DNA of 62,945 nt, counting the filler, from Hyphochytrium catenoides (lineage: Eukaryota; Protista; Hyphochytriomycota), in NCBI GenBank assembly GCA_900088475.1. It is 9 parts of 9 records of this genome, joined end to end, with 100 filler letters (N's around TTAATTAATTAA, not from the genome) between each part and the next. Parts side by side here need not be neighbours in the genome. Positions count along the whole stretch, not along the records: positions 32,438 to 51,676 come from FLMG01002005.1; 8 more parts are not named here. One strand, 5' to 3'. Shown here piece by piece: positions 33,601-53,314 of this stretch. Positions within the stretch are counted from its first letter, which is position 1. Each line of letters begins with the position of its first letter. The position numbers and the translations under genes were made by a program. The notes under the pieces are model-generated. The model did no database searches and had not been told where the DNA came from. It saw only the letters and a program-made list of their open reading frames with translations.

Positions 33601-34046
33601 TTCTGTCTCTCTCTGTCTCTCTCTCTCGCTCTCTCTCTCGCTCTCTCTCTCTCTTTCTTGGCATAGCTCTTCCCAATTTCTCTCCCTCCTAAGTTTCATT
33701 GATCGTGTTTCTTTCTCCTCTCTTCCGTTGCCGTCACTCACTATTCCCTCCCGGCGCGCTCTCTCCTTTTTTCCTTCTGTCTTCCTGGTGGCACATCCGC
33801 TGCGGCAAAGTCCTGCTGCGTGCTTCTGCGGCCCTCAGTGTTTCACCATCTGTTTCTAGCAGTCTCTCTTCTGTCTCTCGTCATCTGCTTTTCCTTTCGT
33901 TTTCTGCGTAGCACTTGCCTGTTGGTGCCTGTCCTTGTTGACTCTGTTGGACGGTTGACCGCAGTCGGCACTTGGAAGAAAGAAGCAAAGAAAGAGAGAG
34001 AGACCCAAAAGTAGTAAAGAAAGACCAGAGCCAAAAAGGGAAGACG

Positions 34047-35540
34047 ATGGCGTCACAGGCCAAGCCACAAGGTGCAGAGAGCCTCCCAGTGACTCACTTC
34101 ATTAACAAGCAGCTGCTCCACACCGACGTCTGGTACCGCTTCCAGTATGTCTCAGACTTTGTAGGCTTCACGAAGGAAGATTCAAAGTGCTTGATAGATA
34201 ATCTCTCTACCCTGGATTCTGTTATGAAGCCCGTGCTCGACCTTGTCTATCACAGGCTCTTCAGCTACGATGTGACCAGAGCTGTCTTTGTTGATCATCG
34301 CAATAGAATGGAGAAGAGAGGCTCTCAACAGCCGCAAGGAGGGCAGCAGCAGCAGCAGGATGACCTGTCAGCAGCAGCGGACGAGAACAGCAGCAGCAAT
34401 GAGTTTAGAGACGACGATCTGCAGCTGCGGAAAGACTTTCTGAAGACGTACTTTGTCAAGATTATCACGGGAGACATCGATCAGAGACTTGTCTACTTTA
34501 TGGACTGGATAGGGAGGCTGCATACTCCTGCTGGGATGGGAGGAAGACGGAAGAATAACGTTCCTGTCGAGTATATCCATATCAACGCGCTCTTTGGCTA
34601 CCTCCACGCCATCCTGACTGAGCACATCATGCTGGCCCCAGAGATGCAGGACAAGCCAGAGGAGATGCGGAAGGTTGTCTCTGCGCTGACGAAGATCCTG
34701 TGGATCCAGAACGATCTCTTCGCCAGACACTATGCCAAAGAAGAAGAAGAGTATCAAGAGCACGAGACGACCACGGCAGAGCTTTATCAAACTCTTAAGG
34801 ACAAAGGTGAGGTCCGAGAAGCTTTCACAGCGTACGTAGAGAAGCAACATTGCGCCGAGACCATGCGATACATAGAGCTCGTGCTCAAGTTTGACCTTGA
34901 GCAAAGTCCAGAGGGCCGTTCGAGCCTCAGCCGGCAGATAGTGCAGCAGCACGTACAGCAGGGTTCTCCGAACGAGGTGAACATCAGCTCTAAGATGCGG
35001 ATGCAGATGTTGCAGACAGTAGAGAAGGCTGGAGACCGTAGTGACTGCTGGAGGCCGTGCACAGAGGAAGTGTTGAACCTTCTTCTCCCTTCTTATCTGC
35101 AGTTTTTAAAGCACTTCAGTAGTGCTGGCCTCTCCTGTCCGATAGGAAAGAGAGGAAGCGAGAACCTGCGCAGAGGCTCAGCATCATCCTCGGTATCTCC
35201 GCCTCCTCTTCCCGACGCTGGCAGCCACCAACAACAACAGGCGACTGCCAATGTTGCTGGAGGAAGAGGAGCTGCTGCAACGTCATGTCCAGCAGCTAAT
35301 GATCACGTTGGCAGGAAAAGGAGTTCTACCAGGCCCGCACCCTTTACGGGCCTGCTAGGCAGGTGGAAGAACTCAACCTCCGAATGGCTGTCAAGCTTGA
35401 GCATCGGGGCGAGGAGAAAGAAGGTCTACAACGAAGGATCACATCAGACAGCCGGACCGTCACGCTGGCAGGGCGTGGCAGCGGAGTCTACCAGCAGGCC
35501 CTCAGACACAGCGGCAGGACCTCCGCTGTTCTCTGCGTAG
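34047..35540 (+). CDS. Intronless 497-aa protoglobin (sensor-globin)-RGS fusion protein
   Basis: Globin about 34090-34733: YRFQYVSDFVGFTKED, VYHRLFSYDVT, RKDFLKTY, MDWIGRLHT, VEYIHINALFGY, KILWIQNDLFARHY. RGS about 34779-35114: FTAYVEKQHCAETMRYI...SPNEVNIS...EEVLNLLLPSYLQFL. First in-frame ATG is 34047. Confidence 0.88.
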   Translation: MASQAKPQGAESLPVTHFINKQLLHTDVWYRFQYVSDFVGFTKEDSKCLIDNLSTLDSVMKPVLDLVYHRLFSYDVTRAVFVDHRNRMEKRGSQQPQGGQQQQQDDLSAAADENSSSNEFRDDDLQLRKDFLKTYFVKIITGDIDQRLVYFMDWIGRLHTPAGMGGRRKNNVPVEYIHINALFGYLHAILTEHIMLAPEMQDKPEEMRKVVSALTKILWIQNDLFARHYAKEEEEYQEHETTTAELYQTLKDKGEVREAFTAYVEKQHCAETMRYIELVLKFDLEQSPEGRSSLSRQIVQQHVQQGSPNEVNISSKMRMQMLQTVEKAGDRSDCWRPCTEEVLNLLLPSYLQFLKHFSSAGLSCPIGKRGSENLRRGSASSSVSPPPLPDAGSHQQQQATANVAGGRGAAATSCPAANDHVGRKRSSTRPAPFTGLLGRWKNSTSEWLSSLSIGARRKKVYNEGSHQTAGPSRWQGVAAESTSRPSDTAAGPPLFSA

Positions 35541-36401
35541 TAAAAGAGTGCTTTGCTCGACTCCTCCTCCTTGTTTAACCTGCTTGGTCCCTTGCTCCCG
35601 CATTAGCAGCAAAAGCATTTGGCGCCAATGCTGCTGCTAGCTCTACTGCCTGACTGCTCTTACTAATCTACGATCAGGAGCAGCAGCAAGAGTCGGAGAA
35701 GTCCCAATGATGAAAGCTTGAGAGCGGGGACAGGCTTGAGGCTTGCAGGGAGCTGCACGTGCATGCTCCACATCTAATTGTCACACAGGCAACAAAAATT
35801 GCCATGCAGCCAGAGGAAATAATATTGAGAGCAGTGGGCGTCGTAGTACCAAGATGAGCCCGGTCGTCCTGTTAATCCTTGTAGAATCAACGCAAGCTTA
35901 CTCCTTATTAACTGCAGGTCGTCCGGCCACCATCTACATATAGTCCTGCCTGCCCACTCTTCTGTGTTAGTGTTGCCACCTTTACGGGCTGATCATCCCC
36001 GCTCTCTCCTCCATTGCCCTCTTCTGCTGCTGTTGCTACAGCCTTCTGCTGTCCCACACTGTTCGGCGGCGGCGGGGCCATGCTGCTGCAGTGCTCTGGC
36101 CCGCCTGCTACCTCTTCTCTTCCCGTTAACCTCCCATGATATCTCTTCTTTCTTGCCTTTGTCTTCTTCCGGCTGCTGCTCCGCATTTTCCTCTTTTCCC
36201 CTCTCACAAGTTCAAGAAGACCGCTCTTCCTCTCGATCCCACCCTGCTGCCGGCGGCAATTCTGATGATTGTCCCGTCGTTGGAGAAGAGGTTCACGAAA
36301 GAAGGCTACGGGAGAGGGAAAGTGCTTGGGGTGGTCTGACTCTCTACTTCTTCTTAGGCTGGCGATGCTTTTCTTCTTTCTCATTCAATCTCTATAGCTC
36401 T

Positions 36402-36456
<55 letters not shown>

Positions 36457-39384
36457 ATTTTGGATGCAGTAGGCCATTATCATCTTCTTTCCTTTGACAG
36501 ACAAAGAGAAGGAGGAAGGAAGCCATCATCATCCACAACATGACTTCTCAGGACTGCCTCTTCAACAGGCACGGGCAATAAGAGCATAGTCTTGCGCCTG
36601 CTCCTTCCTGCGATCCTTCATCCACATTGATGATGGTTGGCAGCTACTCCGTTGGGGCTCCGCAAAAGAAAGTCTCCCCCGCGTTGTGGAGCGCCCTTCA
36701 TGCTGTCAACGGCTGCAGGTCTTTCCCTTCCTCTTGTACTGCAGCCAACGGCCTTTGCGATGCATTGAGAGTCGCCTTGCATGCAAGGGGTTTGGTGCGC
36801 CTGCCAGGAGGTCTGGAGAGGGGCCAAGAAGGCGGATCATCCACATGATGGCAGGCAGAATGATGGAGGCTGTTCCTCTCATCTATCTCATGCTGGCAGC
36901 TTTCCTCCCGTTGTGAATAGCCAGGAAGGCCGCTGAAGCTGACGACAGACAGTGAAATAGCTTGTCAAGGCGTCAAGAATGGTTCCCACAGCTGTCTATC
37001 CCACAGCCGTCCTGCCTAAAGACTAAAATAATATTGGCCGACATGAGTGACAATAGCGGCCGCGGCCGCATGGACCTACCGCTAACGACGACCATCATCT
37101 ACCTTTTGGTACCTGCCCTAATAATGACGCGAGTCCTGCAGACAACAAGCGGATCGCTGCTGCTTGCCCAATGATGTGTCTTCTTCTCCTAGTGGTTGAA
37201 GACGGTGATGGCTCTCGCTTTGTTGGGAGCCATCGCCCGGGCGACAGCTTTTGTTACTCTTACGCCACCACCGAAGAAGAGAGAAGATAGAAGCTGGACG
37301 ACTCACTTCATCATCTATTGCATCGTCCTGGCAGCAGCCCACCAGCAATCTTCGATCCTTCTTCCTCGTGCTCATTAGCCCTCCATATTATCCTTCTGTC
37401 ACTGTCCACCTTCTTCTGGACTAGTAATATATCGAGGGGCCGGGAGAAGTAGGCTACATGGCTGCTTGGGGAGCGAAAGGACAGACGCAGCTTCATCTTA
37501 CTTTATTCACTGCCTCGTGTCACTATTTTTTAAGTTGATAGCTACGAAGAGAAAACAAATCGTCCTGGAGAAGTAAAGCAAAAGCCTTGGTTGAAGAAGT
37601 GTCTACAAGGATGTTATCTTTTGGCCTGTGCTACTTCGACTAGGATGAAGATGAGCAGGGCAGCTGAGCTGATTGGCCTTGAAGATGAAGGAGGCGCCAC
37701 CACGACAGCAAGCATAATATTCATGGTACCCAGTCCTCCCTTCTTGGCGCCAAGCACTTATTGTCGGAGGAGAAGTGAAGTGAGCGGTGGCCGGTCGATC
37801 CATGCTTCTCCCTGACGTTAACTTCATCATTAAAGCGACATATGTTCTTCTTCTTCCTTGATTGAATAGATGACAACAGAGAACATATACACGGGAGGAG
37901 AGACATCGAGACGACACGCTGCCCACTGCGCGTGTACTACTAGCGATAGGTTGAGAATCTAGCAGGAGAAGCCTAGGACGGGACCGCTTCGCTCAAGCAT
38001 CGAGTGGCTCCATCCGAGAAGAAGAACGCACGTGCAGACTCCTAGTAGAGGAAGCCTAAATCATTCAGATGGACTCATCCTCCTAGGTTCTTCCCTTCTT
38101 TCCGACGCTTTGACGGCGGTACACTAAAGGCCTTTAGCAGTTAGTGAGCTGAGCAGCAGCAGGAGAGAGAAGGAGGATGCTCGCTGTCACAAGGCAGGCT
38201 CAGAAGAACTCCGTATGTTGCCTTTCTCACAGAACTAGAGAAGAGTAAGGGAAGGTGGGCAGCAGCCAGCTTCCGCCCATGCTGTTTGGCGTTACCAGCC
38301 TCCTGCACCCGGGCCGACCAGGCCCCGAAGAGCCCATCATCAAATCCCCATCCGGCTCGATGACTCTGTCTTCCAGTCCCTTTCCTCCTCCAGCAAGAAG
38401 CAGGGGCTCAGGCTCATCATTGCAGGTGAGCAGTAGGAACTTTCTCAAAGTAGACAATCTAATGAGCGAAGTTCACTATTCGTCAAGAAAGTGAGACAAG
38501 AAACCTCGCTAAGGAACCTCGCTTGGCCGCTGCCGCCTTGGACATCCATACCCGGTCTGTTGCATGGTGCCCACCATCACCAAGGAACCAATAAGCTTCC
38601 CCTTTCCTCAGCAAAACTGATAGCGTAGTAGCCCATCGTCCCAATGCTTGCCACCTTATAATCTTGATACATCTTCGGGTACGATCGCTCAACTCGCTCA
38701 ACAAGAAGGACGACATTGAAAGAACGACTGGGTGGACACTATGGGCGCGGGTACATTACGGCGTGGCTGGTTTGCCTGGAACATTCTCTAGAAGAGCAGC
38801 AGACTTTGGTCCAAGCCATAGACAATGCTCCCGCTAGTAGTGGGCAGAAAAGCTTTGAGAGTGGGAAGAAGCACCACAGTTTCTCCCAGCGAGCTTGTGC
38901 TGCTGCTGCTGCTCTGTTCGCCGCATGATGACATGGATGGGCAAACCTCGCATCACTGTTCGCCCGCTGCTCTCGGGCTATGTCCACGTTCAATCGATGA
39001 TGTCAGCAGCAGGAGGGCAGCAATAATCTCTATCCTATGAGGAAGTAATGATGATGGCTTCGGGAAGAGGATGTGCATGTTCATTCTTCTTCTTCTCCAC
39101 CTAGTCCAGACCAATTTCAAGAGGCAAGATCACCACCTGTTCTGCAGCAAGGAATGCATGCGCAGCAGTGAGAGCACGGACTAACTGAGCCGCGCGCAGG
39201 ATGCCGTCTTTCTCTGACTCTCATGCCAGTCACTCAGCGCTGATGGAAACGGGAGGAGGACAAGAGGAAGAAAAGAGAGAAGAGAAGAGAGCAGCTGCCT
39301 CAGAAAAAGATTCACCAAGAAGTTCATCATCCAGCCATCATCAGAAGTGAAACGAGACTGAAGATATGACGGCGAGAGAGAGAG

Positions 39385-39432
<48 letters not shown>

Positions 39433-41744
39433 AGAGAGAGAGAAAGAGAGAGAGAGAGAGGGAATGAGAGGGAGAGAGAGAGTCATAAAAGAGGAGAGAG
39501 AAGAGAAAGACAATGGAAAGATCCAACACAGGGAAGAAAGATTCTCTCCATTATTGGCTGCTCTTCCATCACCTCTTAACCTGCAACCCCCACTTCTCCT
39601 TCAATACGACATTCCTAGGAAACGCTCGTTGATAAGCCCCGGGTTAGAACAAGCTACAGAAAAGAATTGTGAAGCGCTGAAAGCCATCTGCTGACTTTAC
39701 CTACAAATCGCGGAAGACAGCAGAATACGAAAATCATAGGTTCACTGTCCGCACCCCATGGATTCATTATTAGGCATTATCGTCCCAGAGTTATATGATA
39801 GGGCAAACAGCTCCAGAAGCCGGCACCCAGCCGCCCTTGGCCGGTACATAGGATCCGAGAGAAGATGAGGCGGAGGAAGAAGAGACGGCAGTGGACAGGA
39901 GGAAGGAGAAGAGAGACGCCAGCAAGAGGTAAAGAAGACGGCGAACAGAGGCCAAAGTCCTCGGTGATGTCAGCGCCTGAGAGATCCTGCAGCGCAAGGA
40001 GAAGGAAGAAACAAGCAGCCAGAGCCCCCGCAACGGCCCTCCTTAGCCTTCCCTCTTCCCTCACGTGACGCCATGCATCAACAAGCGAGCAGTAGTGAGC
40101 CCATCACTCGCGGTACAATGCACTGATGAGGCTTGCTGGCTGGCGGGGGTGTGAGGAAGGGTGACCCGGGAAGAAAGAGGTACCCTGGTGGCGAGAACAG
40201 CCAGAAGTCTCTTGCAGGTGCTTCGCTTCTTGCCTCCTGTGCGATGCAACAGGTGCTAGCCTCACAGCAGCACGCGGCAGCGCGAGGCTAGGCAGAACGA
40301 CGGCAACTGATACTGAGGAAGAGCGGAACAGGAGAGGAGAGGGTAAGAAACGATGATGGAGAGAATGGAGTGCCGCGCCATAAGATCTCAATGACGTCCT
40401 CCTTTTTCTCTCTTTTCCCGCCCTCTCACGCTGTCTCTTTTCTCCTTTCTCCCTATGCCTGTGCCTTTCTTCTACATTGCCTTTCAGAGCTTGGACGAAC
40501 TCATCTTACTCATAGTCTTCTGAACAGGCTAAGCCACAGCCGGAGAGTAGTAGTGCTAGCCCTTGTCTTTCCAGTCCCTTTCTCCGAACCTTCTCTTAGT
40601 CCTTCCTTTTTCAGGGCTCTCTCCTCTCACTCTTATAGTCTAGGGATGATAGGGTGTACCTGGTCTCTCCACAGGCTTCTTTCTCTAGCTGTCCGTGTCC
40701 CTTAGCTGTCCTCTTTGGTCCTCCGGCTCACCAAGATCCAACATCGTGCTTCCTGATGACCAATAATGACGTAGGAGCTCGTCGTCCCTTTCCCTTCCTG
40801 CGTGACGTTTGCTAATAACTTCTGCCTAGGGAGAAGCAGGGATTAAGGTCACCACCATAGATCTAGGAACTGCGTACTCCCGGAGTTAACTAACTGAATG
40901 AGCGATCAGAACTGGTTCCGTATCTTTTCTCTTCCTCTGCTTCCCAGACAGATCTTACGTCTGTCCTCGCATCCTTCTCCCGACTGAGTACATTCTTCTA
41001 GAGGTCTCTGTCTGTCCACATATTCAGAAGCAGAGTCGTGCTTTGTGGCTTAGCACCTGCATGGAAAGAAGAAGAAGGGAGAAAAAATAGAAGAACTGAA
41101 GGACAAGAAAGAAAGATCGACCATCTCTTTGCTTTTCTGCTCTTTCTTTCTTCCTTGAGCTGGCCTTACGACCTGTCTGTGCTAGGATCCAGGGGACGGT
41201 TCTGTTAAGAGAGAGAGGGAAAGCGAAAGATCTCCAGCTCTTGCCAAGCGCCTACGTTTGTTGAACGTTAAGCTTAGAAGCGAGGCAAGGGTAGCTTTCT
41301 AGCGAGACTGGGAGTTCTTCGACGGCAAGGAGGAGGAGCTCCAACCTAAAGAGAAGAAAGAACTGGGAAAGAGAGAACTTCGTTGTTCTTCCGACTTTCA
41401 GGGAGGAGTTCTTCCTCTGTCCCTTGCACAGCCTGGCCCTGTTCTCTCTCTCGTTGAGAAACAGGCAGCGAACCCTGCCACCCCATCCCGGTGCCACCAT
41501 GACCACCATAAAAGAGAGAAAAAGTAGAGGATCTACCTTCCCGCATTCTCTTCCTCTGCAAAGCTCCTTTGCTGCCAGTCCTGCTGTTGGAGTTCTTCAG
41601 ACCATCGCACTTTCGATTTTGATCGCTATCCCAAAGATCGCTACCAGCCAGCAACCAAGCCAAATATTATCTTAAGAACTTCCAATCCAACACCCGCAGC
41701 AAGTCGAATAACCAGCTGAGTGCAGAGCCTGAACCTTCGTTGAC

Positions 41745-43754
41745 ATGGCAGGAGGAGACGTAAGTCAACAGCTCATTTGCCAAGCACAATGCCTCTTCAA
41801 TCATTTAGCATGTCTTCTTCCCCCTCCTGGCCTGCTCCTTCCTCCCGCGCCGCTTTCCACCGCATTATAGACTAACGCTCGCATCTGCTCCTAACCTCCT
41901 GATGAACAGAATCGCCGTGGTATGTCCGCCCACGAGGCCGGGAAAAAAGGTGCTTCTGCCCGCTGGGGCCGTGATTATACGAAGAACGACGAGGGTGCTC
42001 GGGGCACCATGAGCATGAGCGAGGCTGGGAGAAAAGGAGGCCAAGCCAGAGGAGGTGGAAGCCGCAGGAGCAGCGGCGGCGGAAGCGGCAACAGACGCGG
42101 CACCCGAAGCGCCACAGACCGTGATCCTGAGGAGGAGGAAGAGTACAGCATGGAGGACGAACTTTATGGCGGTGAAGATGACATCATCGACGTCCAGCGC
42201 GGCTACGTTGGAAAGGCCCGTGTCCCCTATCAAGGCCAGCAGAAGAAACAGTCTACGGGGAATCGTGGGCAAGACTTCATCGAGAATGATGATGAAGGCA
42301 GCGTGATGGACGAGGAGGAGATGTATGATGAAGACGACATTGCAGGCGAGGCGCAAGACCGAGAGAGCACTCCAGCCAAGAATCTCCGTCGGAACACCAG
42401 GAAGAACTATGACGAAGACGCAGAGGACGATGCAGACGAGTACATTCTTCAAGAGGCTGAAGACATTGAGGGCGCTGGCGGTCTCGCTCGTAGACAAGGT
42501 CAGGGCCAACAAAGAAGCAAGGGAGGCAAGTTCACTGCGCATGAGCTGGGCAAGATTGGAGCCTCAGCACGCTGGGGCCGAGACTACACGAAGAATGACG
42601 ATGGTGGAGATGGCCGAGGGCGTATAACCACCCATCAGATGGGTAAGAGAGGTGCATCAATCCGTGAAGGACGCGACTATGGAGAAGATGAGGACGAGGA
42701 GGAGGAGGAGCAGCAGCCTAGACGTCGTCAAGGGGGAGGAGGACGCCAGGGCAAAGGCATGAGCGCTCATGAGGCCGGGAAGATTGGGGCTTCTCGTCGA
42801 TGGGGCCGAGACTATACTCAGGATGATGAAGGCGATGAGGGTACTATGGACACTAGGACCGCTGGCAAGAAGGGCGCTTCTCGAAGGTGGGGCCTGAACT
42901 ACGATGAGGAGGACGCGGGTGAAGACCAGGAGGAGGAAGAGGAGGAGGAGCAGCCTCGTCGCCGCCAGGGAGGAGGAGGTGGTCGCCAAGGAGGAGGAGG
43001 CCGTCAACAGGGAGGCAGAGCCATGAGTGCACATGAAGCTGGGAAGATCGGAGCTTCTCGGCGTTGGGGACGTGACTATACCCAGGACGATGAAGGTGAT
43101 CGGGGCACCATGAGCATGAGTGAAGCAGGAAGGAAAGGTGGCCATGCAAGATTTGGCAGTGGAAAGAGAGGAGGTGCGATGCGCCGAGACCGCGACTATG
43201 ACGAAGAGGAGGAGGAAGAAGAAGAAGAGGAGCAACCTCGTCGCCGCCAAGGGGGAGGAGGCGGCCGCCAGGGAGGTCGAGGCATGAGCGCACATGAGGC
43301 TGGAAAAATTGGAGCGTCCCGCCGTTGGGGCCGTGACTATACGCAGGACGATGAAGGTGATCGGGGTACCATGAGCATGAGTGAGGCAGGAAGAAAAGGT
43401 GGCCAGGCAAGAGCTGGCAGAGGAAAGAGAGGAGGTGCATTCCGTAGAGACCGCGATTATGAAGAAGAGGAGGAAGATGAAGAAGAGGAGGAGCCCCAGC
43501 AGAGAAGCAGAGGCGGTGGTCGCAGTGGAATGAGCGCCCATGAAGCCGGAAAGAAGGGAGCTTCCGCTCGTTGGGGCCGTGAGTACACTCCAGACGAAGA
43601 AGGAGGCCGTAAAACGATGAGCATGAGTGAAGCCGGCAAGAGGGGAGGCAGAGTGCGTGGTGGCCGCAACCAGGGTGACGACAGACCAAGTAAGAAGCAA
43701 AGAGCTGAACAGTTCGATGAGGATCTTCGTGGACGCATCGCTGCTCAGCCTTAA
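41745..43754 (+). CDS. KGG/GsiB/LEA-group-1-like repeat hydrophilin, paralogue A; exons 41745-41759 and 41910-43754
   Basis: MAGGD|GTAAGT...CTAAC...CAG|NRRGMSAHEAGKKG, matching the start of paralogue B. About 12 motifs of the types MSAHEAGKxGASxRWGRDY and MSMSEAGRKGG, separated by poly-E/D and R/G/Q tracts. Confidence 0.85.
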
Positions 43755-45749
43755 GTTTTGCATGCTTTGCTACTTTTTTGCATTATAATGACTAATGATG
43801 GATTTTGATAGCTTTGTTTCCCTACCACTATCGATTGCCCGACGACCTTCCCGCGTCTGACTGTCTTGCTAACCTCAAAAGCTGCAGATTCTCTCCGTTG
43901 TGCCATGACTATCTTCTCTTCGTTAAGCTTCTCAATCATTAACACCTAGTTCTCCATGGACGGAAAGCGTCGGCTGAAGTATTCTCTTTGCCCTCTTCGT
44001 TCTGCTGGAGGCGATGTCAACAATCGTTGTCCCGGTTATTTCTTAGTGGAGGAAGAATGCTGAATGATGATTGTCTCTTGCTGCTCTTCCTACTCTTCTG
44101 ACAAAGTCAGATCGCAAGAAGCTGCAGGTGGTGCCATCTGCAATGCCGGCGTTCTCCTCATCATTGTTGCCTCATTCAGCTAGATTAAGGGGAAATCGAC
44201 CAAGAAGAAGATGGAAAAGCTGCTGTTACTACTTCTTAACTAGAAGGAAGGCTGGAAGTAGCTGGGTCTTGCTTCTCGACAACTAGGTTGACGGAGGAGG
44301 ACTCCGAACAAACCTCGGTCCCTAGGCTGCTGGTAGCTGCTGTCGTCATAACTCTGAGCAGGAGCTTGTATCTGATCTCTGCAGCAGCAGAAACGGAAGT
44401 ACACAAAGCAGCCTTGACAACACGACGTCATCATGAACGCGATATCATCAATGGAAGAGGACGAGGAGGAGAAGTGTTCCATAAGCCAACAAGAGGACCA
44501 GACGATGGACGGAAGTGGACAATTGTTGCTTTGCGGATCGTCAGATCATCTTGTGATTCCTTTCGAAATTGGCCTTGTGAGATCGCGGCTTTCTAAGATA
44601 AGGGGAGTTCCTATTAGTTCTATTATAAGCTGAGATGCTGGCGCCAAAGGGCAAGGAAGGATGTAAAGGCCGCTTGTCCATCAAGCTTTATTACCAAGAC
44701 ATCTCTCTCGCCTCGGACAGCGGTGTAGCGCTGGCTGACTGGGAGAAGGTGGTTAGTGTGCCTCAGCTTGTGGTCGTAAGACTAGCTGTCACCTACTATG
44801 TTTGCTTCTTCTTCCACGCCTTCCCGCCATCATCAGTGACTAGAAAGAACCGACACATCTTGCCTATCGAATCGGCCTACTATGACGTGCCGAACAAGAA
44901 ATATTTTAACTCGTCAGCACCATTATGCTATCTGTAGAACTAGTATCGGACCGGAGACCAGAGGAATGAGCTTACTCGCTGACCAGAGCACTCCTTTGCA
45001 TAGTGCCTCGCAGCGTCTCGCATCCTGATGAGGCCACCAGCCCAAAGGTCAGGCTTCGCTTTGAGGTGAGCTTCTTCTTATCATCTGAAAGACTGGTCGA
45101 AGAGGGAGGATTCACTCGCCGACACAAGAATGGATAGTAGAAGACCGCTTTGCCAGTACTCCTTAGTGGAGCGCGCCTCTAAGGTTGCTTAGCCAGTATT
45201 AGCGGATTGCCTACTACGGCGAGAAGGTAAGAGGAGAGGTTGCTCGACGAAGAAGCCCTGCGACAGCGCGTCTTCCCAATGGCTCTGTAGTTTATGAAGC
45301 CTTCTTTGGCTAATTAGCCCACTGCGATCGGTAGTAGGTGTCATGCCTGACGCTACATCCTTCCCGCGCTTATAACTAGTTGCCACCTTCTCTCATTAGT
45401 CATTACGTCCCTTGTGGCTTGGTCTCAAGGGTCATGAGGCTTTCTAATGCATATACAGAGGGAGGATTGAAGAGGAGAACAAGGATCAAGTTCTAGGAAG
45501 TCTGTCACCGCTACGAACTGCTGCTGGTGAGAGGTGACACTGATGTCAGCCTTTCTCTAGGGCCTCTTCAACCGCTGACGTAAGACATATTCCTTTATTA
45601 AGCACCTTCGCCACCTTGACAATGTCCCTTGAAGGCCCTTCCTCGCTGAGCCTCCTTCCTTGTCTAGAAAAGTAGTTCTTAGGTGTAGCAACAGGGCCCC
45701 TCCTTCATCGCCTGGCTGCTTGTCGCTCCGGCTACAAGGTGGTGGCAAG

Positions 45750-46098
45750 AGGTATGGGTGATGATGATGCTGCTGCTGGTGGTGCTGCTTCTGTATAGTG
45801 CTGCCTACCCCTGCTGCTGATGCTGGTGCACGGCTTCTCTGTCGTGCAGCCTATCCTATCCCTCCTGCTGCTGGTGGTGCTGGAGATGATGCTGGTGGTG
45901 CTCCTCCTAGCTCCTGCCTGTTAGCCTGGTAGGTGCTGCCCGCTGCCGCTTGCAAGCAAGTGCTACCACTGCTTGCTGCTGGTGGCTGGGCTGGAGCAAG
46001 CTAGGAGGACGATGGCAACCTGTTGCTTTGCTAGCTGCTTGCTGGTGGTGGCGCCTCCGCTCTTCTGATCGCTCGCTGTTTCCATGCAAAGAAGACAA
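45750..46098 (-). pseudogene. Possible decayed Gln/His-rich coding-like tract
   Basis: Reads ...GRS*EEHHQHHLQHHQQQEG*DRLHDREAVHQHQQQG*AAL; three in-frame TAG codons among CAG/CAC runs. Confidence 0.3.
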
Positions 46099-47623
46099 AC
46101 ACTATGATAGCCGCTAACGGCCGGCTATAGTGCCCAGGACGTCGTCCGCTGTGTGGCGTTGTGTCCTGTTCTCCCTCCGAACAACCGGTGTAGACGCACA
46201 ACAAGACCACCCATCCCCCATTAATATCACCAGAATAGATCTATCCCACACGCCTTATGGAGTGTACGAAAGATCGCTGTAGAAGAAAAGGAGAAAGGAT
46301 TTTGTAACGGATGATGGGCCAAACCAGGGCGATGACAGGCTCAGGGCGCCGCGAAACGCAGCTGCGCGGTGCACTAGCAGCAGAGGTAACATCGATTCAA
46401 TGAGAGAGTGAGCACATAAGCAGCTCGTAGAATGAGAGAAGCAGCAGCAGCAGCAGCAATGGAGAGGGACGATGGCCAGCAGAGATAGAGAGAAGAAGAT
46501 AATTGAGGAGGGAGGAGGAGAACAAAGACTTTTCTGCTGATGATGACGGGATGCAACAGTTCTGAGGAAAGATGAGTAAGGAGAAGGGGAAGATAAGGGT
46601 GATGGAGTAAAGGATTGGGGGAAAGGAAGCTCTAGGTTTTGGTCAAGGGAGAAAGAAGCAGGCAGACATCTCCACACTTCCTCCTCAAAGGGAGAAAGCC
46701 AATTGTCCAAATGGTCTAAACGGCTAGGGATACTAGGCCCTGGGTAGCACTGTTCCCCAAATAGCAGATGGAAGAAAGAAGGGAAGATGCAGGGCAACTC
46801 TTGGCAAGGCCTCCTTTCTTGTCCTTCTTTCCCTTTCCTGATGCCCGGGACAGCTGGTATCCCTCTTTCATTGAAACCTTGGGTCCTGCAGACAGCAGCT
46901 TCCTGACATTCTGGATTAGAGGAGAAAGCAGTTGAGTTCATAAAAGTCTTCTGGTTCTTTATAAACTTTACACTTTTGGGGTGATAGCTGCGTACGTACT
47001 CAAGAGAGGAGAGAAGGTGAAGACGTACTCCAATAGCGACCGTAAGCACGAACACAAAGCTTCCTACTCCTCGTCAAAGATCTTGGTCCTTGATTCTTTC
47101 TTCCCTCTTGCTCTTGCTTCTTTCTACAAGTAGGCTTAGCCTATCCTTACCCTTGAAAGTTAAATGTATGGCATTCTAAGTAAGACCCTAAGCTTTTCCT
47201 CATCTAAACTTTGGCCCTTTGGAGCTGAAGTTGCTTCCTTGGTCTCTACCTGAAGGACGAGACCACTGCTGGTTGGACAGACATGCAGGGAGATCAAGGC
47301 AGAACGAAGAAAGAACTTTGATGTTCTTTCCTCCTCATCGTGCTCTCGCTGTTCTGTCTCTAACTGTTAGGAAGTAGTAGTTAGAGCTTAGTCATAAAAG
47401 AACTCATAAAAAACGAGGCGGACTCGTACTGAAAAAGTTCCCTACTAGTAGCGTCAGCACAAAAGCGAAGATCTTCGAGCTGTAGGTCCTCATCTTCCTC
47501 GTCATTCAGAAGCTCTCTGTGACTGCCACTTTTCATTTTGAACCCTGCAAAGCACCAACAACGTAGCATTTTTGAAGAAAGCAGCGCCAAGGCAGCGCAG
47601 CAAGCATCTGTGGTACAGAAACC

Positions 47624-47631
47624 TATTATAA
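47624..47631 (+). promoter_or_regulatory. TATA-like element upstream of paralogue B
   Basis: TATTATAA about 30 bp before the ATG at 47657 in an otherwise GC-balanced context. Confidence 0.25.
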
Positions 47632-47656
47632 GAGGCAGTAGACAGCTCTAAGAACC

Positions 47657-49456
47657 ATGGGAGCTGGAGACAATCGTCGCGGTATGTCCGCCCATGATGC
47701 AGGAAAGAAGGGCGCCTCCAGAAGATGGGGCAAGAACTACTATGAGGAGGATGAGGATGACTACGACGAGGAGGAGGAAGAGCAGCAGCCTCAACGCCGC
47801 CGCCAAAGTGGTGGTGGCCGTCAAGGCGGAGGCAGACCTATGAGCGCCCACGAAGCAGGTAAGAGAGGAGCTTCTGCGCGCTGGGGTCGTAACTATCTTG
47901 AAGACGACGATGAGGGAGACCACGGTACGATGGACATGAGCGAGGCGGGAAGAAGAGGAGGCCAATCTAGAGGAGGACAGTCTAGGGGTGGCAGTCGCGG
48001 TGGAGGAAGCGGCGGCCAGCGCCGAGGCATGAGCCAGCATGATGCAGGCAAGAAAGGAGCATCCATCCGTTGGGGCCGTAACTATATGGACGAAGACGAG
48101 GAGGATGACTACGAAGAGGAGGAGGAGGAGCAGCCACGCGGCCGGCGCGGCGGAGGCCAACAGCGGCGCGGAATGAGCCAGAGTCAAGCCGGCAAGAAAG
48201 GTGCTTCCGCTCGGTTTGGACGTAACTATATGGACGAAGAAGAGGAGGAAGACGAAGAAGAGGAAGAGCAACCCCGACGACGTCAGGGTGGAGGAGGTCG
48301 TCAAGGTGGAAGGGGTATCACAGCCCATGAGGCAGGACTTCGTGGAGCTTCGGCCCGGTGGGGGCGTGACTATACCCAGGATGATGAGGGTGATCCTGGC
48401 ACCATGACCATGAGCGAAGCTGGCAGAAAAGGAGGGCAAGCACGGGGTGGCAGCCGTGGAGGAGGCGGAGGAGGGGGAGGTCAACGCCGAGGAATGAGCC
48501 AGCACGAAGCCGGCAAAAAGGGCGCGTCAGCCCGCTGGGGTCGCAACTACATGGACGAGGACGAAGAAGAGGATTATGAGGAAGAAGAAGAGCCACGAGG
48601 ACGCCGGGGAGGTGGCCAGCAGCGCCGCGGAATGAGCCAGAGTCAAGCAGGCAAAAAGGGTGCTTCTGCCCGATTGGGAAGGAACTACATGGATGAGGAG
48701 GAGGACGAAGAGGAAGACGAAGAGGAACCTCCTCGTCGTCGACAGAGTGGTGGCGGGCGCCAAGGTGGTCGAGGTATTACGGCACACGAGGCCGGCAAGC
48801 GAGGAGCATCTGCGCGTTGGGGCCGTGACTATACTCAGGACGATGACGGCGATCGGGGTACCATGACCATGAGTGAGGCTGGCCGAAAAGGAGGGCAAGC
48901 AAGGGGTGGCTCCCGGGGAGGAGGAGGCAGCAGCGGCCAGAAGAGAGGCGGGATGAGCCGTCAGGAGGCCGGAAGGAAGGGAGCTGCAGCTCGATGGGGT
49001 CGTGAATACTCTGAAGAGGAAGAAGAGGAGCAGCCCCAGCAGAGACCCACAAAGAAGCAGAGGAGCTCTTTCACGCCAAACAAGAGAATTCCAATGGTCA
49101 ACGAGGAAAACCGTGAGCTGTACAACGCCATCCGTGAGCTTCAGGAGTATGAGTTCAGGAACAATAATAAGGTTGAAGGTGCCATGTGTGCCGCGGTAAG
49201 TCCCTTCAACTAGCCCTTTCCCCTACATCCCCGAGCCCTGAATGACTCACATTACCTTACTCTTTCTTTTCCGGTCCTATGTTCTGAACAGCTCGGTAAA
49301 ATCATCAGAGAAATGGATACTCCAATCGAGTCTATTGATGACTTAGCTGAGGTGCCCAACCTCCCTCCTACAGCTTTGAAGCACATTGAAGAGTTTATGG
49401 AGACGGGTACAATTAACAAGACGGAAATTCTCCGGCAGATTGCGGCTCAGCCCTAG
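47657..49456 (+). CDS. KGG/GsiB-like repeat hydrophilin, paralogue B, with a C-terminal Pol X/Pol beta N-terminal-type helix-hairpin-helix domain; exons 47657-49195 and 49292-49456
   Basis: Twelve repeats. GCG|GTAAGT donor at 49196, CAG acceptor ending 49291, phase 0. Spliced tail NRELYNAIRELQEYEFRNNNKVEGAMCAA|LGKIIREMDTPIESIDDLAEVPNLPPTALKHIEEFMETGTINKTEILRQIAAQP*, ending in the same IAAQP* as paralogue A. Confidence 0.85.
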
Positions 49457-50380
49457 ACAGCTAGCTTCACCTCTAATAGGGCGAGTCCCATAACAGGACA
49501 GCAAATGAACAGTTTTGTCTAATCCTACCAACTTCGTCTGCAAGCGCTGCCTTTTCTAAACCATGCTCATGAGCCTTTTGCTGATTGTTCTTTATTGAAC
49601 TCCCAAGCAAGCAGTCTGGGGAACGCCGCTTGTCCAGCTCGGAAGAGCTTCCAGAGTTCATGACCCTTAGCGCAAAGGCAAAGACGTACCTTCGATCCTA
49701 GACTACGTAGAAGTAGTTGAGCTGACTTCGACCACTAGGATGGCCCCGCCAGCAACTCGTTCCTGCGAGACGTATCAGTCACTCCACTACATACATTTCT
49801 ATTATAAGTAGAAGAGGCATGGGGAGAGTTGTTGGCACCCTTTACTCTGCACGTTGATCAACAGGTCAACGGCGAGAGGAGCAGCAGCCCTTCCAACGTG
49901 TTTCTGGAAAGAAAAGCGCTCGTATGATGATAGGTACGGTAGAGAGAAAGCAATAGAGGACAAACAACTGCAGGTCTCTGAGACACCAACAAGATGAGAC
50001 GGTGAGACCAAAGGGATAAGATTGTAAGACCAGGATGAAGATCCAAAGATGCTTATAAAAAAGGGAACAACAGTAATGAACAACCAAAATTTAAGCAGGA
50101 CAAAGCGAGGAGAAGCAGAAGAGGAGAGAGTAAGAACTACGACTACCTGGGAAATAGAGTACTAGCTATCACCTCCCTCTACTATCTCTTCCTTCTCTCT
50201 TTTTCCGTTTCCTCATCGCTGTCGTCGGTATGACTACTCTGTCTTCTTCAATACTTCGTCCTTGTCACTTATCCTCCCGTTCCCTTCCTGCACTGCCAAG
50301 TCACCACGTCGGCATGCACCAACGGACGATGCTGACGTTTGTCCTTGATGGTCAACTGAGCGACTGCTTGAGCGGAGGCG

Positions 50381-50540: not shown

Positions 50541-51107
50541 GAAGAAGAAGAGATAAACAGAGCGGAAGCGGATGATGGAGCGTTAGACTGTAACGGCCCC
50601 GTTTCTTTCCTGTTTTCTACCCTTCAGTCAAAATTTCCCACAGTCCAAATGACAGTCAGATGGGTAGGGTACGTTCTGGTAAGAAACAGTATCTGTCACG
50701 CATAATACCTTTATGTAAACTGGATAACTTCCCCTTCACTTCGTCAGGTACCTCTTCGGGTGGTCCAGTCTGTGGGAGGCCAGGGTACTGTTTAACTGAA
50801 CGAAATGTCCGATCCCACAAGACAGGTAGCTCTTGACCAATATTAAGAAACAGTGTAACCCCCACCAGATTTCCTAATAATCAGGGTTTTGCTAGTTTCC
50901 TCTCCAAACTCTATGGTCTACCATAGATGTCAGGCCTCATAAAGAGATAAAATGTGCATTCCGCCGCAATATCCTACTTTTTATTCTTCTGTGACCTTAG
51001 GGAAAAGTCCTTAGTCTAAGATATGCCTAGACATTGGAATAAACTCCGGTTCAGACAGTTGTTGTCATTGGACATTCATCACTCTCTTTCTCTTCCTTTC
51101 TTTTTCG

Positions 51108-51159
<52 letters not shown>

Positions 51160-53314
51160 NNNNNNNNNNNNNNNNNNNNNNNNNNNNNNNNNNNNNNNNN
51201 NNNNNNNNNNCTCTTTCTCTCTCTCTTTCTCTCTCTCTCTCGCTCTCTCTCTCGCTCTCTCTCTCTTTCTCTCTCTCTCTCGCTCTCTCTCTCGCTCTCT
51301 CTCTCTTTCTCTTTCTCTTTCTCTCTCGCTGTTTCTCCCACACTCTCTCTCCTTTCTGATCTCCAGCTTGGTACATCTGCAATGCGAAGCCTCGCCTTAC
51401 ACTCTCCCATCAGGTCCCCATCCAAGAGAGAAGAAAGGAAACAATGTGAAGCCATTCATTCCTCTATGAACAACTCTCGCCGCTGTGCTTGCTGCTTTCA
51501 GCACCAACCGTAAGAAACCCAACAGAAGACAATGCTTGGGGAAAAACGGTTCGGAGCCACTCTTCCTCATGGAGTCGCCGTTCCTAGGTGCTGGCCGGCA
51601 AGCACAGCTAGCCAGAGGAGAGGGAGAAAGCAGAGCGGTGAAGCTTTTGGTCCTTCAAGGACCGACAGCCATTGAGNNNNNNNNNNNNNNNNNNNNNNNN
51701 NNNNNNNNNNNNNNNNNNNNTTAATTAATTAANNNNNNNNNNNNNNNNNNNNNNNNNNNNNNNNNNNNNNNNNNNNATGGAGACGACGAGGCTGCCATCC
51801 TGACACCTCCTTCTCTCTCCCACCGGCGTAGGGCAATAACTATTATGGAAACTGAGGATATTATTAGCTGAAGGTTGTTGTTATTAGCCGGAAGAAGAAT
51901 GATTGCAGGCCGACGACATTAAACGCCGATGTACTAGATTATTATAGGAAGGAGGCAAGGAGAGCAAACCTACTTGGCTTGTACTAGGGACGGCCGGGAG
52001 AAAGGGCAGTCTACTGCCAGGTCTACGGGCTTCCCAACAACAAGGCAGCCTGTTTTTTAATAGGGCCAGCAGAGGAGGGTAAGATATCCGGTGTGAATGA
52101 GAGACTGTGACGCAGATATCCCCTAGTGGTGGAGAGGAAGAGAGGCTACATTGAGAAGGACAAGAACAGACAGACGAAAGAAGAAGACTGCCGTTTTATG
52201 AGTGAGTTGTCCGATGATTCTACGTGGAGGCAGACTACAGCTAGATGATGTTGCGCAGCAGGAGGCGCATCATCTTCATTGCCAAGAAGCCAGCTGCTGC
52301 TGCTTATCGATGGGTGCCGCTGCTCAATCACAAGCAGCGCCTGATCGCTAATAAAGCGAAGAGGCAGTCCATCAGAAGATGTGGACTAGGCTCTACAAGC
52401 TCGTCCCCTAACCATCTCAATCGCCGCAGAGCATAAGCGATCAATCCTCTAGAAGGTAAGTTAGCCTTTGATAAGTGGCGAGAGGCTACCTGTCAACGGT
52501 GGCTGTCGTGAATGCAATGTTCTCCTTTTTGGACCCACGCCAAAGATATTACCGAGATTTGTCTAGATAGTAGATATAGAGGAAAAGGTGTCGGCGAGCT
52601 GTCACAGCGCTGGTCTTAGCACAAGATGAGGTCAATCAAGTCAGCCGCACGAGCGGCGAAGAAGAAGCGGTTGCGGCGGTAGCATATGCGGCAGGCAGTA
52701 AACGTTCAATCCAGAGGCACGCAAGGCTCTCCATCTCTATGAAGCTGGAGGCTGCTATCTCCTGCTGGTATTTACCTGATTATTGCTCCTGCACTTCTCA
52801 GTCACCTCTTTGATCAGCACCACCTGCTGACTATTATGAAGACCTCCAATGATTGTTGAGCGACTGAGCTCTTCGAAGACTGACTCCCAATTTGTCAAAC
52901 AACAGCTCGAAGGGCCTCCTATAGCCTCCATAAAGATCATGCGCGGCAGCGGGGCGGCACTGCTGATGCAGCAATAGGAGGCAAGCTGGAGCAGCAGCAG
53001 CCTGGCAGGAGGAGGACGGACAATGACGACGAAGAAATAAAGCCAGCAGCAGCGGGCCAAATCCTTGTGTTTGGGCCACTTGAAGTCTTGAACTCTTAGT
53101 CCCGAAAAGAAAGACACTCGTGCGCCTTGAAAGTTCTAATACAAAGATACGGGTTACGGTGTGAGATAAATGGAAACAAATGAATCCTTCAAAGGTACGG
53201 TCAAAGTTTAGCAGCTTCTGGGGGTGGCTTGGGGGGACGAAGACTAATATAAGAGTTGATTCCTCGATGATCTGTCAGCTGAGCCTCTGGCTACCCCAAG
53301 AAGCGCCATCCCAA

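Follow-up and report, generated by a model that had tools for sequence, protein, structure and literature searches.

Results

A two-exon gene with a hidden last exon

The stretch of DNA analysed here (the window, 62,945 nucleotides with filler) is made of nine parts of the genome assembly of Hyphochytrium catenoides. The gene that concerns us lies on the plus strand of the part taken from record FLMG01002005.1 and encodes a long, hydrophilic repeat protein ending in a small module that resembles a helix-hairpin-helix (HhH) domain. Read without splicing, the listed open reading frame (ORF) runs from 47657 to 49213 on the plus strand and gives 518 residues. The initial annotation had proposed that a 96-nucleotide intron conceals a last exon from this reading. 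The intron falls between codons, so that exon 2 stays in frame, and the spliced product of the two exons has 567 residues (Table 1).

That the intron is removed came from contigs of four public RNA runs, which we mapped onto 47560–49620. A contig of 344 nucleotides aligns to 48990–49194 and 49291–49422, with a shorter side of 132 letters, and skips 96 nucleotides with GT..AG ends. The joint, at 49194/49291 (cut +1), was found in two plant metatranscriptome runs (X5 and X10), which belong to one study and count as one, and it bears out the hidden exon exactly. Since the junction contig is ~92–93% identical to the gene (14 and 11 mismatches), it comes from a close relative and not from the sequenced organism. 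None of the contigs of the four runs covers the intron. Other contigs of the same relative span 47560–47991, 47811–48188, 48405–48727 and 48799–49195, and no upstream ATG was read in 47560–47656.

The listed coding substitutions between the relative and the gene fall on codon position 3 in 27 of 32 cases, on position 1 in four and on position 2 in one. This third-position bias marks the frame as coding and constrained, down to the helix that closes exon 1, where all four listed differences are at third positions. The gene is a genuine, expressed two-exon gene, and its counterpart in the close relative is transcribed in plant-associated samples. Long antisense ORFs over the repeats (e.g. minus strand, 47648–48505) were rejected because of the third-position pattern in the plus frame; we take them for by-products of a purine-rich coding strand. 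On the minus strand, an ORF of 69 residues (47381–47590) has its ATG only ~20 nucleotides from the 5' end mapped for the transcript; it is possibly the opening exon of a divergent gene, or else has no significance. An exact-sequence look-up of the 518-residue ORF and of a 610-residue ORF found nothing on record.

Table 1. Positions of the features, counted along the window
Feature	Position	Strand	Remarks
5' untranslated region, minimum extent	47560–47656	+	RNA contigs of the relative begin at or before 47560
Exon 1	47657–49195	+	513 codons
Type-B units	47924–47995, 48398–48469, 48857–48928	+	Only unit type matching Pfam KGG
Super-repeat copy 1	48017–48481	+	Residues 121–275; units A, A, A', B; TRF (Tandem Repeats Finder) and codon comparison
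Super-repeat copy 2	48482–48937	+	Residues 276–427; codon comparison with copy 1
Basic motif RPTKKQR, like a nuclear localization signal	49043–49063	+	RPSKKQR in the paralogue
Predicted helix, residues 483–512, proposed first half of the module	49103–49192	+	AlphaFold, predicted local distance difference test (pLDDT) ~70
Intron	49196–49291	+	96 nucleotides, phase 0, GTAAGT...AG; in-frame stop at 49211–49213 if retained
Exon 2	49292–49456	+	54 codons (49292–49453) and stop TAG (49454–49456); HhH-like half of the module
Degenerate hairpin VPNLPP in place of LPGVGT	49352–49369	+	Register of the Pol beta alignment
His codon CAC at the Lys72 position	49382–49384	+	Register of the Pol beta alignment
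Tandem paralogue	41745–43754	+	Mini-exon 41745–41759 (MAGGD), intron 41760–41909, exon 41910–43754

The repeat region of exon 1

Exon 1 encodes a chain with 20.5% glycine, 94 lysine and arginine residues, 103 aspartate and glutamate residues, and a grand average of hydropathy (GRAVY) of -1.79 (length-weighted over both exons, -1.64). Hydrophilins are said to have been defined, by Garay-Arroyo and colleagues in 2000, by a glycine content above 6% and a hydrophilicity index above 1; by its glycine content and GRAVY exon 1 has the hydrophilin character suggested for it earlier. AlphaFold gave residues 1–482 a pLDDT below 50 and no secondary structure, and these ~480 residues are predicted to form an intrinsically disordered, very hydrophilic chain.

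A motif scan found twelve in-frame units in this chain. The nine of type A read MSxxEAGKKGASARWGRNY (pattern M-S-x-x-E/D/Q-A-G-K-K/R-G-A-S-x-R-W-G-R-N/D-Y), and the three of type B read MSEAGRKGGQARGG (pattern M-S-E-A-G-R-K/R-G-G-Q-x-R-G-G). The units are separated by runs of D/E and of RGG/RQGG (RGG or RRRQGGGGRQGG), and are ordered [A A' B] [A A A' B] [A A A' B] [A], in which TRF recognizes a tandem repeat with a period of 459 nucleotides in two copies. The two super-repeats, of 153 residues, share 138 of 152 aligned residues (91%), and 79 of these 138 are encoded by different codons. Base differences between them number 103, distributed 10/5/88 over the three codon positions, with a nonsynonymous divergence (dN) of 0.063 and a saturated synonymous divergence (dS). 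Identity of 91% in protein despite 88 of 103 differences at third positions indicates strong constraint. The duplication is old, with nearly every residue kept, the acidic and glycine runs included, and the disordered chain is under strong purifying selection. The basic motif proposed to precede the C-terminal module is present; in the relative, an A>G difference listed at 49049 would make it RPAKKQR.

The units had been likened to the EAGRKGG-type motifs of stress proteins, which holds in part. All twelve are in-frame matches to the motif, and the type-B units match the KGG family (PF10685) over profile positions 11–22 of 22. Their best score of 17.7 bits (E ~0.005), however, is below the cut-off of 20.4 bits, and nine of the twelve units have a distinct 'EAGKKGASARWG' / 'EAGKKGASARWGRNY' form without a KGG match. 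Among 34 units of the wider family, six match KGG and none of these is of type A (E ≤ 1). Exon 1 as a whole has no Pfam match, and the repeat profile found no match among solved structures. The kinship suggested with the LEA_5 family (PF00477) did not hold, as neither exon 1 nor its pieces gave a match at E ≤ 10. We read type A as a derived member of the KGG-like motif world, the protein itself lying below the Pfam cut-off for the KGG family.

Relatives of the repeat family are few. In a word-indexed homologue search with the whole of exon 1, low-complexity words dominated, and 8000 scored candidates yielded one match. The repeats alone retrieved only P0006 (L001), a protein of 474 residues from a JGI contig, and P0001; the exon-1 tail alone retrieved nothing. 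P0001 is a hypothetical protein of Aphelenchoides avenae, the only named relative found, which we take to be the anhydrobiotic nematode also called Aphelenchus avenae. Its intron-bearing gene (L005:8001–9435, on the 275-kb contig JNEY01000176.1) adjoins peptidase C1 (cathepsin-like) and P450 genes and has no HhH-like tail.

The alignment of all 34 units was too variable to scan with; a subset of eight yielded three further contigs (L002–L004). Two JGI metagenome contigs carry long, hydrophilic, eukaryote-like ORFs (L002:2977–3795 and L004:184–2694) which combine the EAGRKGAAARWG type-A unit with KGG/LEA-like F-x-E-x-G-K/R-K-G-G units. In L002 a type-A unit and a KGG unit occupy opposite ends; the ORF passes the KGG cut-off with 22.8 bits and matches LEA_5 weakly (E 0.027). 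L004 has a type-A unit, units of the F-V-E-M/L-G-K/R-K-G type, and a basic SPSKRTR motif at its end. The third, a TARA ocean scaffold (L003:2683–3081), encodes a DUF1376 protein, by its look of bacterial or phage type, that ends in RRRRQEAGRKGAAARWG, the same twelve-residue EAGRKGAAARWG motif as in type A. The type-A unit thus appears to be a short module common to different domains of life. No sequence like the C-terminal module was found by tblastn in L001–L004, the contigs covered by that search.

The C-terminal module

The initial annotation had recognized in the spliced tail a degenerate form of the 8-kDa lyase domain of DNA polymerase (Pol) beta. Exon 2 alone matches HHH_8 (PF14716) at profile positions 37–72 of 73 with E 9e-4, but its 20 bits lie below the cut-off of 30 bits, and the exon-1 half scanned alone gives nothing. 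Exon 2 also matches HHH_3 (E 7.5e-3, 16.8 bits). Against solved structures, its best match is TthPolX of Thermus (residues 36–85, E 0.053, one gap), and Pol beta 52–90 follows with E 0.59.

The ungapped alignment to Pol beta proposed earlier was reproduced by HMMER, in which LAEVPNLPP...EILRQ pairs without gaps with residues 59–90 of the 6cr3 chain, though the pairwise E of 0.6–0.8 is non-significant. The register of 32 residues keeps an EF-x-x-TG and K-x-E-x-x-RQ signature after the hairpin. It also reproduces the replacements proposed at the hairpin and at Lys72. N-L-P occupies G64-V65-G66 (G64→N, G66→P), so that the Gly-hydrophobic-Gly hairpin of HhH motifs is lost. Lys72, which we take to be the lyase nucleophile of Pol beta, is replaced by histidine (K72→H). 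Among K60, K68 and K84, presumably the lysines of the 5'-phosphate pocket, the first two are replaced (K60→A, K68→T) and K84 is kept. Fingers, palm and thumb domains of a polymerase are absent, as had been claimed: the stop codon follows directly on the residues IAAQP and no long ORF lies downstream. Since the hairpin glycines, Lys72, Lys68 and Lys60 are replaced and no polymerase follows, the module cannot be a 5'-deoxyribose phosphate lyase of the Pol beta kind.

For exon 2, AlphaFold run on the single sequence (pLDDT 67.6) predicts helices at residues 15–18, 26–38 and 43–51, a spacing of helix, hairpin, helix and helix as in HhH. An NRELYNAIREL helix had been proposed ahead of the aligned tail; it does lie inside the helix predicted for residues 483–512, but no family can be recognized from that half alone. 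As a lead, we presume from the known fold of Pol beta that the exon-1 helix would fit helices 1–2 within residues 11–58, with a shift of at most one residue. The module length of ~80 residues would likewise, as a lead, equal what we take to be Pol beta 11–90. Against the compact bundle of four to five helices expected of an 8-kDa domain, the two pieces, folded apart, gave one helix (residues 483–512) and the three of exon 2; Foldseek and Atlas shape favour Pol X, and VIA-align does not.

Foldseek against the PDB gave nothing for exon 2 at E ≤ 0.001; family X polymerases (TthPolX, TdT, mu, lambda and beta) fill its first 35 rows, at E 0.5–5. By Atlas language-model features, the listed top named clusters are all HhH and mostly HHH_8, with scores of 0.85–0.87 that serve as a lead only. 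The Atlas shape search with the exon 2 model placed Pol X or HHH_8 in seven of ten rows, with template modelling (TM) scores by query of 0.46–0.58.

The searches for relatives of exon 2 were exhaustive in one library, in which phmmer was run against 1.84 billion representatives. Two of its rows (P0002 and P0003) were rejected as repeat artefacts; P0004 and P0005 were set aside as ComEA-type HhH arrays with repeat-inflated scores (~8–10 bits per repeat).

We consider that exon 2 probably contains a genuine motif of the HhH clan. Specific descent from the 8-kDa domain of family X polymerases is more doubtful, and we lean slightly against it, while one compact 8-kDa-like domain spanning both exons is likely.

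Several observations weigh against this interpretation. No HhH score reaches its threshold (HHH_8, 20 against 30 bits; PDB, E ≥ 0.05; Foldseek, E ≥ 0.5; Atlas, 0.87), and the lines of evidence for HhH are correlated because all derive from one sequence of 54 residues. A purely structural PDB search with VIA-align using the 54-residue exon 2 model was uninformative: no Z value exceeded 3.8, and Pol mu came only at rank 38. The exon-1 tail alone received no Pfam, PDB or Atlas assignment. No orthologue of exon 2 was found among the 1.84 billion representatives, nor was the module found in JGI metagenome and viral contigs, where our scans reach close relatives only; conservation of the module can thus be assessed in one close relative and not beyond. 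The stretch had moreover been selected in the first place for this same resemblance to Pol beta. Finally, loss of both hairpin glycines elsewhere goes with pseudo-HhH motifs that bind proteins, not DNA.

A tandem paralogue without the module

A paralogue lies 3.9 kb upstream on the same strand; it has the same unit types and likewise no Pfam match. It begins with a first exon of 15 nucleotides and an intron of 150 nucleotides (GTAAGT...CAG), both without counterpart in the module gene. The N-termini of the two proteins match (MAGGD-NRRGMSAHEAGKKGAS in the paralogue and MGAGD-NRRGMSAHDAGKKGAS in the module gene), and the alignment continues through to the basic motif, RPSKKQR and RPTKKQR respectively. 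Both proteins end in IAAQP and a stop, encoded by similar DNA. Between these anchors, the paralogue has the seven residues AEQFDED followed by LRGR, whereas the module gene has ~95 residues and the intron. Hence the module was either inserted into one gene or deleted from the other. A tblastn search of the analysed piece brought up no further copy of it.

The two genes have a eukaryotic structure with short introns (96 and 150 nucleotides). The regions that flank the paralogue (36400–41700 and 43800–47500) contain CT/GA microsatellites and no long ORF, tRNA or Rfam match; tRNA and Rfam features are absent from the whole analysed piece. A neighbouring ORF at 33972–35540 on the plus strand (522 residues) matches Protoglobin (E 7e-30) and then RGS (E 5e-10), and its product is a putative globin-coupled regulator of G-protein signalling. 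A gap of N letters and further CT repeats lie near 51100–51300.

Discussion

The gene described here joins a long disordered chain, in which KGG-derived basic units alternate with acidic and RGG runs over ~480 predicted residues, to a conserved basic motif and a helical C-terminal module of about 85 residues, whose exon-2 half would be a helix-hairpin-helix closest to the HHH_8 type. In our preferred reading, which we hold to be evenly poised between right and wrong, the module would be a non-catalytic anchor that localizes the chain at the DNA backbone or at a partner protein. The module would dock a chain resembling stress proteins onto DNA or the partner, and the tandem paralogue, lacking the module, would act untethered. 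The protein may be nuclear, may bind DNA or a partner, and may serve a protective function under stress or during dormancy, for example in cysts or spores. The estimates that we attach to this proposal and to its alternatives partly overlap.

The most probable alternative is that the module is a generic small helical domain for interaction or oligomerization, made of a long helix and a three-helix cap, and that its likeness to HHH_8 arose by chance or convergence, with no contact to DNA through the module. The sub-threshold HhH scores, the uninformative structure-only search of the PDB and the replacement of GxG by N-L-P are all consistent with such a domain. So are the coiled-coil and bZIP-like feature matches of the exon-1 helix, of low score, and the lack of homologues, among the 1.84 billion representatives searched, from which a profile could be built. 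Chance likeness, however, does not readily explain why Pol X or HHH_8 came first in five differently built searches, why an ungapped register of 32 residues retains the EF-x-x-TG and K-x-E-x-x-RQ signature, or why the helix spacing fits HhH, and we consider the generic domain rather unlikely.

A second alternative concerns the chain instead of the module. The protein could be mainly a nucleolar or RNA-associated protein with RGG and acidic blocks, of the type of a condensate scaffold or a histone or RNA chaperone, its likeness to KGG reflecting only a shared short basic motif. The blocky alternation of D/E with RGG/RRRQGGGGRQGG, the 94 lysines and arginines and 103 aspartates and glutamates of exon 1, and the conserved basic motif would suit such a protein. 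Nine of the twelve units are without a KGG match, the whole protein has no Pfam match, and the EAGRKGAAARWG motif also ends the unrelated DUF1376 protein. On the other hand, the type-B units match the KGG core, both L002 and L004 mix type A with KGG/LEA-like units, L002 even above the KGG cut-off, and the one relative with a species name comes from Aphelenchoides avenae, which we take to be anhydrobiotic. We regard this alternative as unlikely.

In a third alternative, which we regard as very unlikely, the module would be a double HhH of ComEA type (HHH_3) whose two hairpins have degenerated, without descent from the 8-kDa domain of Pol X. In its favour, the HHH_3 score of 16.8 bits is near the 20 bits of HHH_8, and the only HhH proteins among the four library-wide phmmer matches are the tandem HHH_3 proteins P0004 and P0005. 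Against it, the scores of these two are inflated by repeats, Pol X or HHH_8 is preferred in the PDB, Foldseek and both Atlas searches, and the tail past the hairpin matches Pol X beyond the end of the HHH_3 profile.

Like the KGG proteins (PF10685: YciG, GsiB and fungal con-10) and the group 1 LEA proteins (LEA_5), the protein has small basic 'S-E-A-G-R-K-G-G-Q' units and is glycine-rich, very hydrophilic and disordered, and its type-B units fit the second half of the KGG profile. It differs from them in being far longer, in its interleaved acidic and RGG blocks and in its C-terminal module, which is predicted to fold, in addition to the absence of a LEA_5 match and of any unit at the KGG cut-off, and to the distinct form of most of its units. 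Exon 2 resembles the Pol X 8-kDa domain in its profile match, in its ungapped pairing with Pol beta, in its helix positions and in having that domain as its nearest models by Foldseek and Atlas shape. Unlike the 8-kDa domain, which is N-terminal on an enzyme, the module is C-terminal on a disordered protein; it scores below the cut-off, has G64, G66, K60, K68 and K72 replaced, lacks polymerase domains, and its first half is unrecognizable alone. HHH_8 also stands alone in proteins of bacteria and Nucleocytoviricota, which form Atlas clusters of 69–120 residues. These are likewise without a polymerase and are nearest by features (0.85–0.87, leads only), but they are small, single-domain proteins.

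A further comparison is with the tardigrade protein Dsup, which is long, disordered and protective and binds chromatin through a short element near its C-terminus. The analogy is functional only: the Dsup element is an HMGN-like motif and not HhH, Dsup has no sequence relationship to the protein described here, and the protective role of the latter is our inference. It is conceivable, though unlikely, that a eukaryotic family of hydrophilins acquired the 8-kDa domain of a Pol X, that the lyase and hairpin residues of this domain were then lost, and that it now pins the strongly conserved chain to DNA or chromatin, as a convergent counterpart of Dsup.

In the literature searched, we met with no account of a KGG/LEA-type protein that carries an HhH module, and no relative that we found has the fusion of KGG-like repeats with such a module. 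KGG-like hydrophilins are already known; what appears to be new is the type-A unit and the C-terminal module. The rare 'EAGRKGAxARWG' unit, which Pfam does not annotate, is found in a nematode, two eukaryote-like metagenome ORFs and a DUF1376 protein. The architecture and the extreme constraint on the disordered chain are unusual, while the key homology is sub-threshold and the lineage narrow. The constraint on the super-repeats, unusually strong for disordered sequence, argues that the exact sequence of this 'low-complexity' chain matters. If the module truly anchors a KGG/LEA-like chain to DNA or chromatin, the protein would offer a simple model of how a hydrophilin is targeted to the object that it protects, and the neighbouring paralogue without the module would provide a built-in, natural comparison with an untethered chain.

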